64,000 bases of DNA from Octopus sinensis (GCF_006345805.1 NC_042997.1:117366001-117430000), one strand, 5' to 3'. Positions 49,501-55,500 are shown, numbered from the stretch's first letter. The notes: generated by a model not told the origin, from the sequence alone. Translations and numbers: made by a program.

Positions 49501-52500
49501 TTAACCATAGTTTTAATAACACGTTGAAATACAGTAAATATCCGTCTTTTTTTTTATTGCTGCCATTGTTATTGTGGCACTGCTGCCTCCTTTAATAGAA
49601 TCTCGGTGAAAATTAGTAGATACCACGCAAAACAATACGAAATAAACCTCTTTATCAATGAGAGCATTCGATTTGTTTCTCAAAAGTATTCTCGCCTTTT
49701 TACATAATTTTCTTTTTATTCCATTGCATTCCTCCTACGAAAATTTGTTCATAATCATTTTTTTTTTCTTTTCGGTTATTTGCCGCCTGTTTTGTAAACA
49801 AACATTTCCAATGTTTTCTTTCTAACAACTACAATCTCCAGTTAATTTGTTCCATACTCTTTCACCTATGATCGTGTGTAGCGTTAAAATATAAACACCT
49901 TCTCGGGATATTTTTTTTCTACGAACAATGCTCTTAATGTTTTTGAAAATTCTAGTTATTCTATGAATAGGGGAAAACATGACATAAATAATTAATGCAG
50001 CTTTAAAATAACGTTTCTTTTCCTTTTTTTTTTTTTTGGTTTGCAAGATTCTTGGTGTGAAATCGTGTATTGAAACATATTTTTGTTTTTCTTCGAAGGG
50101 TCATTTTACTAATAAGAAATACACGTAGTGGTTATATTTCACTTTAACTACTTAACCAATAAATCCGTTAACTAATTGACTGTTTGATTAATTGTTTAAT
50201 AGACCAATCAATTAGTTTGTTTGTCAAAATATTTTCGTCGCCTTATCAATAATATTAATATATTTCTCACCTAAATATTAATATCAAAATTATTCACTAT
50301 AACTTCGTTATTAATTTCTTTGTTGTGTACTTTGACATTAACAGTGACATATTCTGAGAAACTTATCAATCACCGTAGCTATACTGCTTATTTTTTTTCG
50401 TTCATTTTTTCGTTTTTCTTTTTAAAAAGTTTATTTTAAAATGAGTGAGAAAATAACGTATGCTATTTCATTATTGAATGAATAAGCACTGGAAATAGCC
50501 GAGCGTATAATACTAAATTGATATATATATATATATATCGTGGAACTCCGTCGGTTACGACTACATGGGTTCCAGTTGATTCGATCAACGATACAGCCTG
50601 CTCGTGAAATAAACGTGTAAGTGGCAGACACGTGTACCCTTAACGTAGTTCTCGAGGGAGCTTCAGCGTGACACAGAGTGTGACAAGGCTGGCCCTTTAA
50701 AATACAGGTACAACAGAAACAGGAAGAGTGAGAGAAAGTGTTGGTCAAAGAATACAACTTTAGGTGTTTTCGCTCAATAAACACTCACAACGCCCGGTCT
50801 GGGAATCGAAACTGCTGCCCTAACCACTAGGCTATTGCGCCTCTACTATGTATGTGTGTGTGTGTGCGTGTGTGTGTGTGTGTGTATTAGTACGTAATAT
50901 TAATACATTTTTTTTATAATCCACAATTATGTATTATGTTTTATCGGACTTTTTTGAACATAAGTACTTTTGTGTATGAATATAAATATTAATCATACAA
51001 TTATATATTCATATCATTTTTTCTGCATCTAATTACTACACAGATTTTTGTATATATCTATTATATCTGTTCAATCTATTAGATGAATATTTTGACTAAA
51101 AGTAACTTCTACGTATTACTAATCTCTATAATAATAAACTATAAATATATTTACCCCAATATTAATATGATACATTATGGTAAATTACTATTTATTGTAT
51201 ACCTCTACACCTATCATCTAGATTATATTAATATATATTTACTTTCCCACGAAATATACAACTTTGGCCCCCACTTAAAATATTTACACCAAACTTAGCC
51301 TTATAACAATACTCAGTTTGCTGTAATGTTCCGAATACTTTTCTGTTCCTTCTCGAGCCATGCCTGGCTCATAAGGGCCGGTCTCCCTGTTTCCTTGGCG
51401 TATAGGTTCCCCACCAGGACGGGACGCCGGTCCGTCGCAGGTGAGCTGCAGGAGGAAAGAGTGCGAGAAAGTTGTGGCGAAAGAGTCAGCAGAAGTTCGT
51501 CATTACCTCCTGCCGGAGCCGCGTAGAGCTTAGGTGTTTCGCTCATAAACACACACATCGCTCGGTCTGAGATTCGAACCCGCAATCCCTCAACCGCATG
51601 TCCGCTGCTCTAACCACTAGGCCATGTGCTTCCACTCCGTATACTTAACACCTTATTATATATTGGTATATCCTTCTCTCTGCCTCTGACGAGAGTCTGT
51701 TTTATGAAATCATTTAATTATTACAACCATAATCTTTAAAGTACGAATCGAAACCGCTGTTAGAGATCATGTTTACTTTTGCATTTAATAAATATACTTA
51801 TTAATTGATGTATCTCCATTTTCTTATTTTTCTTCAATAAATATAAACCTTGGTTTATCTAATTATCTATTATTAATGAGTATTAATATTCACAACAAAT
51901 ACTAGGTAATGAACCAGTAATTCGTTGTATATCACTATCCCTTAATGAGGTTTATCCAACCTCTGTATGTATGTAACATTTTAAAGAAACTTTAAGAACA
52001 ACAAAACATTTACTGATGAGGAGACTCAATAATGAAAGTAGACTGAAATTCATTATAAAATTTCTTTTGGCTGGGACTTTAAGTTTCGCCTGACGGCTTA
52101 CTCAACATCGTCAATAATCCGAGAGGAGAGAGTAGGAAACAAGACGTAGGCTCACGGTATCGAGTCGGTTGGTTCGATTCTCAGGAAAGTAATATGACTT
52201 CGGGTAATACTATCAAGCTTATGAGAACCACTCCCCGTCCGACTTGGTAAATATGTGGTCACGTGTCTACATAAATCAATAATATATTATTTACATTTGC
52301 TAGCACAACGTGTTTGCTGATATACCCTCCAGCCTTCTTCGGGTGTCTTGGGGAAATTTCGAACCTGGGTTCTCATTCCTAAGGTATTTTTCGATGTTAT
52401 TTTCTTTACAAAAAGTTTATTTTGAAATTTGTGAGAAAATAACGTATCCTATTTCATTATTGAATGAATAAGCACTGGAAATAGCCGAAAAATACCTTAG

Positions 52501-55500
52501 GAATGAGAACCCAGGTTCGAAATTTCGCCAAGACACCTGATGAAGGCTGGAGGGTATATCAGCCGAAACGTTGTGTTAACAACAAACAAGATGAGGGCAA
52601 ATATCCGTCTAATGTAAATAATGTACATAATACCTCATCTTTTAAATATAGAACTGTAAAGTCAATATTATTACATGGTGACTGATTTTTGCTTCTTTTC
52701 TTTCCTAGTTTGGACAATACGTTTCGGACAGTATTCTGGTCCCTGTTTGGCAAAGGTGAGGCCTCAGTAGTTGAGCTAGACGGCTTCAGTCATTATTTTA
52801 CCCGCAATGTAGGCTACTGGATTTTCGGTGCATATAACATTAGTACTGTGATCGTGCTTTTAAACATGCTCATAGCAATGATGACAAGGTCATTCGAATG
52901 TATCCAGGTAAGTACACAAACCAGCTCTATCAGTCATTCTGTCTGTCTGGCACTATAGCTGCCTCTCTCTCTCTCTCTGCCACTTCTGCTACTTTATTTT
53001 AATATGTTCTCTTCTATGAATTTTCTTCTTTCTCTTTTACCATATCCCCTCTTTGCTGTATAATAAAATACATTTTATTGTATGTATGTGTGTGTGTGTG
53101 TGTGTATTTACATTGACATCAAATATTTTTTAGTATTAATGATATAAGGATGTACACACATCTAATTTAAGATGAAAAGTGAAACCACTGCTAACTTAAA
53201 CCATGTTTCTTTTATATGGGTTCAATTTATGTGTAGTGTGTTTACTCTGTCCTAGACAAGTGTTGTAAGTCTGTACATACACATACACATGTTTATACAC
53301 CATACATATACATATGCGTACATACGTAGATGCAAGAAAATATCTTTTCGTGTACACATACACACACATCATAGAAACGCAACCTTCATAGAAGCATAGT
53401 TACTTTCAAACAATGGGAAGCCGGGCACATTCCTTAAAAGATGAATATCAATACAGTTGATATTGAAAAGTATACATACATACATACATTACATACATAC
53501 ATACATAATACATACATACATAATACATACATACATACATACATACAATACATACATACATAATACATACATACATACATACATACATACATAATACATA
53601 CATACATACATACATACATACATACATACATACTACATACATACATACATACATACATACATACATACATACATACATACATACTACATACATACATACA
53701 TACATACAACATACATACATACATACATAGTTGAAATTTATAGAGAAACAAAAGACGAACAACAAATAAGTGTATTACATTGACTCTGCAACACTGTATA
53801 TAAATTCCCTACTGGGAATGACCAAGTTTAAAAATCTGCTGGATCTCACTCATAAGGGAATCTTACATTGTTTATAAACTCTATATTTGGAAGGACTCAT
53901 ATTAAACTCTGTTGGACTTTTGGATTTTACTCAAAGGATATTGGAATATTGCATATATATCATTATACCTATAAAACGGATTTATGAACTCAATTCCCAT
54001 ACATATCTTACATCTATTTTCTTTCCTCCACCTCACTCTCTATTTTGTATCACATCGAAACTAACTATGACTTAATTTTTCCTCTCACACCGTCTCCGAT
54101 AAAGGGATATTATTAATTTATATCTTAGAAACAGCTGTAAGACCTATCTATAAATACTCTAATATCTATACAGCCTTGGTTTTTTTATCTCATTATGCAA
54201 AAATTTCTTATATACATACGCTGACATAGAACCAACTTTGAACCCTTTATTCGCAATATTACCGAATCTGGAACTCAATTATGGTCTGTCTATAGCACTT
54301 ATTCAGCATTACCTGACACCTTTGGGTCTCAATGACACCATTATCTCATATATATCTCTATTTATAAAACTGAAATGCGAAAAGTTTGTTGTTTGTTTGG
54401 TTGGTTTTGGCATTGAGAACGGGTTAAAGGCCACTAGATCCCGTCGGATTGACTCCAAAATTTACAGGGACATGTAAAATGAGGTGAGAATGCCAGTGGG
54501 CAAGGTTAGAAATCCCTATCTTAAAAGGTGTCGTTGCTAGGGCCAAAAACGCACTTTGACAAGTCGACTCTCATTCTTTTATTTATCTGTCTTCTTCCGT
54601 CACTCATTCTCTTTCCTCCCTTCCCATCACTGTCTATATATAACGTCGTCTAATGGCGTCCAACTCCCCTTCAGTTTCTCTTTATAACGTCGTCAAACTG
54701 CGTTCTATATCTTCCCCCCACCCCGCCTTCGACAGCGCTTTCACACTCTCTCTCTCTCTCTACGTCTGTCTGCATTCATAGACAGAATTATCATCGCCAC
54801 AACCACCACACAATCATGAGAATATTATGAATCAGATATATATTGGGTTAATTTATATATGTGTGTGTGTGTGTTCTATATATAAATATGTATATATAAT
54901 GTATATACATACAAAGTATATATATCTGTATTTATGTATATTAAACTTTTTAATACTTTTTGATAGTTATATATATTTTTTTTTAATTATAAATATAAAT
55001 TAATAATTTTAATTTTAAATTTAAATAATTTAAAATTTTTAAATTTTATATTTTATATATTTTGTATATTATATTTTTATTTTTATGTTTTGGTTTATGT
55101 TTTTCACTGATTTGCCTATTAGTGGTTTTATCTCTAATTTAATTTATATATATATATATATATATACTTTGTATACATTTGTATATATAATGCGTACACA
55201 CACACACACATACACACACACACACACATATATATATATATATATATATATATATATATATATATATACATTATGTGTGCATTATGTGGTCGGTTGAGCT
55301 GAAAATATGCACACCGATGTTAAAAGTGCTGGCAAGTTTGCATGACAACTATTTTTTTCCTCAAATGAAAGGCGTGACCTCTACGACAAAATTCCTCATC
55401 TTATAAAATGTGGTCCCAGTAGACCCCGAATGAAATCGGGTTATATTAACCAAAATGTGAAAAGGGGTCTAAATGGGGCTGAATGGGATTAAAATTTAAA

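Follow-up and report, generated by a model that had tools for sequence, protein, structure and literature searches.

Penelope-like retroelements (PLEs) have left thousands of minimal hammerhead ribozymes in many animal genomes. In metazoan PLEs, these motifs are characterized by an extra nucleotide between A9 and G10.1, a G10.1-C11.1 pair, palindromic positions 15.2-16.2 without a loop 3, and a long helix II combined with a short helix I (Cervera & de la Pena, PMC4209133). Most of them are solitary remnants of truncated elements, and dual minimal hammerheads located on opposite strands approximately 100-700 bp apart have already been reported (PMC4209133). Furthermore, PLE insertions have been described with an inverted 5'-truncated copy beside them, which gives inverted repeats, and with a one-sided tail of 30-40 bp (Craig et al. 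2021, PMC8557442), and a PLE protein has been shown to cut both DNA strands and to extend them (Frangieh et al. 2024, PMC11167929). We analyzed a stretch of 64,000 nucleotides from Octopus sinensis (GCF_006345805.1 NC_042997.1:117366001-117430000; hereafter the window), in which an element at 52283-52625, located in intron 48820-52708 of a TRPC-like channel gene, carries a hammerhead motif of this class within a long inverted repeat. The element is probably the dead remnant of a PLE, or of a non-autonomous derivative that relied on PLEs. An initial annotation of the same DNA had read it as a regulatory device of the channel gene and overlooked this simplest explanation.

Hammerhead motif and its mirror copy

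The right arm of the inverted repeat holds, on the + strand, a minimal hammerhead whose conserved core is complete, with every invariant position present: GACAC-CUGAUGA-A-GGCUGG(AGGGUAUA)UCAGCC-GAAA-CGU-U^GUGUU. All core positions, the pairing strands of helices I and II, and the palindrome for helix III can be read from the sequence; the initial annotation had reported a complete core with all stems at 52532-52577. The parts of the motif are as follows.

52532-52577, + strand: complete minimal type-I hammerhead, read from the sequence; the sole match of the strict descriptor
52532-52536 with 52573-52577, + strand: helix I, 5 bp with one G-U pair
52537-52543, + strand: CUGAUGA, core positions C3, U4, G5, A6, U7, G8, and A9
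52544, + strand: bulged A between A9 and G10.1
52545-52550 with 52559-52564, + strand: helix II, 6 bp including G10.1-C11.1 (G52545-C52564) and one G-U pair
52551-52558, + strand: loop of helix II
52565-52568, + strand: GAAA (G12, A13, A14, and A15.1)
52568-52571, + strand: ACGU palindrome that would form the loop-less helix III, with the pair A15.1/U16.1 (U16.1 at 52571)
52572, + strand: U17, with the predicted cleavage site 3' of this nucleotide

All four PLE hallmarks are found in the motif, namely the extra A at 52544, the G10.1-C11.1 pair, the ACGU palindrome, and a 6-bp helix II combined with a 5-bp helix I. A strict descriptor, consisting of a 5-bp helix I, CUGANGA, an optional bulge, a helix II of at least 4 bp, GAAA, a palindromic helix III, and H17, gave one match on both strands of the window (52532-52577) and none in 400 first-order Markov shuffles. 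A relaxed descriptor gave two matches in the window, against 0.0125 expected per 64 kb.

None of the hammerhead families of Rfam (Hammerhead_1, Hammerhead_3, Hammerhead_II, HH9, and HH10) reached its gathering score in the window, and no hammerhead family matched 52200-52700 at E ≤ 10. As a control, we examined the PLE-type minimal hammerheads of seven metagenome loci (L103-L107, L112, and L113), which these models also missed at E ≤ 1. The Rfam result is therefore uninformative for this class of hammerhead, and the locus provides a worked example of a bona fide class that the Rfam hammerhead models miss.

The left arm contains a second, decayed hammerhead on the opposite strand, and the two motifs are 230 nt apart from start to start.

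52302-52347, - strand: degenerate mirror hammerhead, CCGAAGA ... CAGCAAACAC, identified by alignment of the arms and missed by the strict descriptor

The mirror copy had been described as degraded in U4 and GAAA. Alignment of the arms confirmed the loss of U4, G12, and A14, and C11.1 is lost as well. The arms differ at 8 of 97 columns, and five of these differences fall within the 12 positions made up of CUGAUGA, C11.1, and GAAA (two in CUGAUGA, two in GAAA, and one at C11.1; hypergeometric P = 0.0006, post hoc). The right arm retains the PLE-type consensus state at all five core differences, which indicates that the antisense copy is the derived one. The core changes may have arisen from different source RNAs or by chance; loss of a cryptic acceptor-like UCAUCAG/G on the + strand of the left arm is another possible cause. 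An ADAR-edited source RNA was rejected as the origin of the arm differences because only one of the eight is A/G, and CpG decay accounts for at most one of the five core changes.

A chance hammerhead-like string in an unrelated inverted duplication might be considered, since loose core patterns (CUGANGA ... GAAA) occur approximately 25 times in the window; however, this explanation is effectively refuted by the single match and the absence of matches in 400 shuffles once helices I-III are required. In addition, the bulged A and the G10.1-C11.1 pair are present although the descriptor allows but does not require them, and all five arm differences in or beside the core show the consensus state in the right arm. 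Judged by its sequence, 52532-52577 appears to be a genuine minimal hammerhead motif and not a product of chance.

Structure of the inverted repeat

The hairpin and the related copy of its loop consist of the following segments.

52283-52297: outer extension of the left arm, 15 nt, TATATTATTTACATT; pairs with 52611-52625 and is paired in the minimum free energy fold
52297-52393: left arm, inverted copy; the complement that would mask the ribozyme in + strand RNA
52394-52485, + strand: hairpin loop, 92 nt, homologous to 50414-50502 of the same intron
52486-52582, + strand: right arm, direct copy, oriented like the TRPC gene (repeat search and alignment of the arms)
52583-52610, + strand: 28-nt segment of the right arm only, bulging from the hairpin (sequence, repeat search, and fold)
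52611-52625: outer extension of the right arm, 15 nt, AATGTAAATAATGTA (repeat search and fold)
50414-50502, + strand: further copy of the loop sequence that lacks the arms; it lies 2 kb upstream within this intron, in the same orientation

The repeat search gave 97-nt arms at 52297-52393 and 52486-52582 that are 92% complementary and separated by 92 nt, and the innermost 41 nt are identical in both arms. The hairpin of approximately 97 bp proposed at 52297-52582 was thus recovered, and the structure proved to be longer than proposed: beyond the 28-nt segment found only on the right, an outer 15-nt inverted repeat (52283-52297 and 52611-52625, 93% complementary) extends the whole structure to 52283-52625 (343 bp). 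The RNA of this region was predicted to fold into a single hairpin of -194.7 kcal/mol (z = -25.7 against shuffles) with a near-perfect stem of approximately 105 bp. No direct repeat family and no tandem array were found within 51800-53100. A microRNA gene was rejected as an identity for the hairpin; in the E-value mode of Rfam only plant MIR precursor models matched, with scores well under their threshold (98.5 vs 230 bits), and these are generic long-hairpin matches.

The loop is 93% identical to 50414-50502 over 89 nt, and its divergence (7%) is at the level of that between the arms (8%). With gaps allowed, 52387-52495 aligns with 50406-50513, and this homology reaches into the inner ends of the arms, sharing TTTTTCG (7 nt) with the left one and CGA (3 nt) with the right one. 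Our best guess is that the loop was copied as filler from a nearby stretch, through template switching guided by microhomology, as the two inverted cDNA ends became joined, and this possible copying of a junction filler from 2 kb away bears on how inverted PLE copies are joined. Alternatively, the loop copy may be an independent small repeat.

Relationship to Penelope-like elements

We scanned metagenome contigs with the pattern CCTGATGAAGGCTG-N6-12-CAGCCGAAACGT, which was derived from the motif itself, and obtained 13 eukaryotic-looking loci of low to moderate GC content (33-52%). The PLE-type motifs of the metagenome loci have a helix II of 5-6 bp and a helix I of 3-4 bp. One of the loci (L104) encodes a 477-aa frame with RVT_1 followed by GIY-YIG in the Pfam search, the canonical PLE architecture, and its motif is located downstream of this frame on the same strand, directly beyond a (TA)n tract. 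In two further loci (L107 and L110), the motif lies approximately 260 nt downstream, on the same strand, of frames homologous to the RVT_1 and GIY-YIG frame of L104 (E 4e-25 and 2e-12, respectively).

PLE debris is also present elsewhere in the window. An open reading frame (ORF) at 30897-31349 (+ strand, 150 aa) matches the reverse transcriptase (RT) thumb/linker of the L104 frame (E 3e-10); it has no Pfam match, and no hammerhead was found near it. The second match of the relaxed descriptor is a solitary motif.

7321-7357, + strand: second solitary minimal hammerhead (relaxed descriptor), UUUUU-CUGAAGA-A-GAGC-UUU-GCUC-GAAA-CGU-A^-AAACA

This motif has the same architecture as that in the hairpin. 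It lies approximately 90 nt past a (TA)n patch and directly before a short interspersed element (SINE)-like repeat, and it is probably another truncated PLE tail.

These observations are consistent with an insertion in which the hammerhead-bearing part of a PLE was copied twice, each copy short and truncated at its 5' end, and the copies came to face each other head to head with the 3' ends pointing outward. Each outer end would then have a minimal hammerhead close to it, the two being on opposite strands. Two cDNAs could meet head to head through a PLE protein that cuts and extends both DNA strands, and subsequently the gene-sense copy would have kept its perfect core while the antisense copy decayed. 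A PLE origin of the arms and a single head-to-head insertion event are, we infer, the most likely history.

Several points weigh against this history. The similarity between the PLE-linked loci and the arm is confined to the 38-nt ribozyme and was obtained with a pattern built from the motif. No reading frame for an RT or an endonuclease stands beside the arms, no further copy of the arms was found in the window or in the viral contigs, and a protein-space search with the reading frame of the arm plus loop gave no candidate. Neutral decay of twin copies does not predict the clustering of the left-arm changes in the core, and two independently truncated copies predict neither the shared inner endpoint of the arms nor the separate loop module. 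Moreover, the 28-nt segment of the right arm is internal, whereas the published PLE tail is terminal. Because no homologue of the arms was found, the assignment to a PLE family is based on the subtype of the hammerhead and on how the copies are arranged.

Some of these features would suit a miniature inverted-repeat transposable element (MITE) or foldback DNA transposon, or a SINE-like or other non-PLE repeat, with terminal repeats that captured a retroelement hammerhead; the hairpin would then be a property of the family. The arms share an inner endpoint, the internal module is distinct from the arms, and the repeat reaches an outer 15-nt segment that resembles a terminal inverted repeat, but no clear target-site duplication could be seen by eye at 52283/52625, and a second copy of the arms was not found in 64 kb that are rich in other repeats. 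A B-box-like GGTTCGAA in the arm recalls the schistosome Sm-alpha hammerhead carriers (PMC6765202), although neither ARAGORN nor Rfam detected a tRNA-like unit in the arm. The exact hammerhead architecture, including opposite-strand pairs, is documented in PLEs (PMC4209133). We consider a carrier of this kind unlikely and prefer the PLE relic.

Predicted behavior of the RNA

The passages on ACGU-type motifs in PMC4209133 and PMC6765202 (the latter citing Lunse et al.) state that these motifs act only as dimers and weakly. The active form described there is a domain-swapped dimer with helices I and III formed between two copies, and the in vitro activity of the class is low even as dimers. The statement of the initial annotation that an ACGU-type helix III requires dimerization agrees with these passages; in the predicted folds, helices I (5 bp) and II (6 bp) are intramolecular, and the loop-less ACGU helix III permits no intramolecular closure and forms only between two molecules.

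In the pre-mRNA, the two copies would pair into a near-perfect hairpin of approximately 105 bp that sequesters the ribozyme, and, with the left arm transcribed first, the right arm could zip up while it emerges. Forcing the monomer hammerhead fold within 52283-52625 changed the free energy from -194.7 to -136.9 kcal/mol, a cost of approximately 58 kcal/mol. In the ensemble of the hairpin, the motif positions were all paired save U7 and part of GAAA. The predicted penalty for the monomer fold in its context supports the earlier claim that the arms pair and mask the ribozyme.

The descriptor scan of the window found no second hammerhead compatible with an active dimer. Inspection of a heterodimer with 7321-7357 led to its rejection because the helix I strands fail to cross-pair (GACAC/AAACA and UUUUU/GUGUU). 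For the isolated 61-nt segment, the calculated energies of the double hammerhead, two monomers, and the best dimer were -24.3, -27.2, and -32.2 kcal/mol, respectively; in this model the isolated motif prefers non-catalytic dimers over the double hammerhead. Owing to masking in the hairpin and to the lack of a partner copy for helices I and III, the ribozyme is presumably silent in vivo. Cleavage of the TRPC pre-mRNA is not expected from these predictions, and the element would be spliced out with the intron.

The suggestion that editing or refolding could unmask cleavage found no support; the window holds no compatible partner hammerhead, and the isolated motif favors non-catalytic dimers. Editing of the right arm would hit adenosines that are essential to the core (A6, A9, A13, A14, and A15.1), and would be more likely to kill the ribozyme than to free it. 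The locus can serve as a worked example of a sense-strand intronic ribozyme motif that would be harmless because it is monomeric and masked.

Host gene and possible effects on the neighboring exon

The window contains a TRP-channel gene on the + strand, whose exons are colinear in tblastx comparisons with two orthologous loci (L001 and L002). The colinear exons relative to the compact locus L002 are located at approximately 26540, 29853, 45050, and 48664, and further ones at 52709-52907, 56653, 58251, 59701, and 61567. The exon next to the hairpin lies outside the element and provides its context.

52709-52907, + strand: exon H of the TRPC-like gene, encoding the pore loop and S6 with LLNMLIAMM (translation)

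Exon H matches Pfam Ion_trans with E 6e-5, yet under the curated cutoff, and its closest protein matches have just 83% identity. The following exon encodes EWKFAR, a TRPC-type TRP box. The colinear + strand exons, LLNMLIAMM in exon H, and EWKFAR in the next exon confirm the pore-exon context claimed in the initial annotation. The acceptor AG of exon H occupies 52707-52708, directly before the first base of the exon at 52709. The hairpin lies in the intron 48820-52708, and the distance of 126 nt between the hairpin arm and the acceptor was given correctly. The stem as a whole lies 83-126 nt upstream of exon H. The two orthologous loci, which are distant, share the exons, and in them no shared intron sequence and no hammerhead were found.

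Intronic inverted repeats are generally plausible ADAR substrates. By analogy, the hairpin of approximately 105 bp is plausibly a promiscuous ADAR substrate, and no host function is indicated for it. It had been proposed to act as an editing inducer for the pore/S6 exon. Published inducer elements are located within a range of 32-220 nt on either side of the edited site, and the model also calls for a separate, shorter duplex, specific to the site, at the edited exon (PMC5654063). We folded 52626-53050 (425 nt around exon H) and found it no better than shuffles (z = +1.12); with the second duplex being required, this result argues against the proposal. The 3' half of the ribozyme (CCGAAACGU, 52563-52571) is perfectly complementary over 9 nt to 52719-52727 near the start of exon H, and no other complementarity between exon and intron was found. 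This pairing was rejected as meaningful; a 9-nt match is approximately at chance level in a 1.3-kb region by a rough estimate, not a computed one, and the hairpin is much the stronger of the two.

The initial annotation read the hairpin as a device that regulates the TRPC gene, combining ADAR recruitment to exon H with a masked but releasable ribozyme; this is very improbable. The distance of the stem from exon H falls inside the published inducer range (PMC5654063), but folding of exon H with its flanks gave no local duplex stronger than in shuffles (z = +1.12). The intact core of the sense copy, next to a decayed antisense copy, speaks for such a device; against it, the ribozyme is an obligatory dimer without a partner hammerhead in the window, the catalytic dimer is not the favored fold even for the isolated motif, and inosine at the core adenosines probably inactivates it. 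Furthermore, the locus looks like a young transposon relic, with arms that are 8% diverged, and it is absent from the two distant orthologous loci.

Co-option by the host, either as ADAR recruitment near the pore/S6 exon or as a conditional self-cleaving switch that operates through editing or unwinding of the left arm together with pairing between transcripts, is most unlikely. If it were true, the core loss confined to the antisense copy (P ~0.0006, post hoc) would reflect selection on the structure, and the matter would be of most interest in a cephalopod. Only if RNA data showed that the pore exon is edited in dependence on the hairpin, or that the RNA is cut at 52572/52573, would the locus become a noteworthy example of a transposon co-opted within a gene for an ion channel.

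Other repeats in the window

The window is AT-rich (GC content 34.7%) and contains many microsatellites, SINE-like repeats, and retroelement reading frames. A Tc1/mariner-like transposase ORF, recognized by eye from its translation only, is located at 19458-20318 (- strand). Beside it lies a non-LTR (long terminal repeat) retrotransposon at 21732-24126 (+ strand) with endonuclease-like and RVT_1 frames and with long (TATACA)n and (ATAC)n arrays on its flanks. Two ORFs of the window gave no exact record.

SINE-like units of approximately 183 bp form short tandem arrays of 2.4 and 2.9 copies at 13823-14261 and 34124-34652, respectively, in opposite orientations, and dispersed copies also occur, including one at 7470-7640. 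We take these units to resemble an abundant octopus SINE. tRNA-derived SINE heads with an A-box and a B-box are located at 51456-51635 (- strand) and 50545-50853, and related copies lie near 3564-3745, 11063-11359, and 27871-28051 in the same gene region. ARAGORN called none of these SINE heads as a tRNA.

In the viral contigs, the generic pattern CTGATGA-N-GGCTG ... CAGCCGAAAC matched approximately 100 stretches, which we assume to be phage hammerheads that share the helix II sequence. A GGCTG-type helix II is common and is not diagnostic alone.

Comparison with known systems

As it stands, the locus matters little. The ultraconserved amniote intronic hammerheads HH9 and HH10 likewise place a sense-strand hammerhead in an intron of a protein-coding gene. 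They are full ribozymes with stable helices and cross-species conservation. In contrast, the octopus motif matches no Rfam hammerhead model and shows no conservation in our data.

With respect to ADAR-substrate hairpins and editing inducers (Daniel et al. 2012, 2017), the element shares a long, near-perfect intronic stem near a coding exon. It differs from the inducers in that exon H has no companion site-specific duplex and in that conservation or editing is not in evidence.

The animal non-LTR retrozymes and the hammerhead repeats of newts and schistosomes have, like this locus, type-I hammerheads with a weak helix III; these are carried by short non-autonomous repeats related to the pseudo-LTRs (pLTRs) of PLEs (bioRxiv 10.64898/2026.07.22.740005). 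A non-LTR retrozyme or hammerhead satellite requires direct tandem repeats of the hammerhead-bearing unit, which allow dimers and circular RNAs to form, whereas in the octopus element the pair is inverted and only one copy is in the sense orientation.

The inverted PLE copies (Craig 2021; Frangieh 2024) are closer. As in those copies, the arms are arranged head to head with the hammerhead ends outward, and a one-sided extra segment of approximately 30 nt is present. Unlike them, the octopus element contains no full-length copy, its 28-nt segment is internal, and the 92 nt at its junction match a sequence 2 kb upstream.

The closest systems are the metazoan PLE minimal hammerheads (Cervera & de la Pena 2014; Lunse, Weinberg & Breaker 2017). 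The octopus locus differs from these in that no adjoining RT/GIY-YIG frame or pLTR was found and in having an exact-ended hairpin around a separate 92-nt module. In common with them, it has a type-I topology with a full core, one nucleotide more between A9 and G10.1, a G10.1-C11.1 pair, a helix II of 6 bp with a helix I of 5 bp, and a dimer-type ACGU helix III, and it is a solitary or opposite-strand remnant distant from an intact element. PLE minimal hammerheads, including opposite-strand pairs, are an already known kind, and this locus is another case of it.

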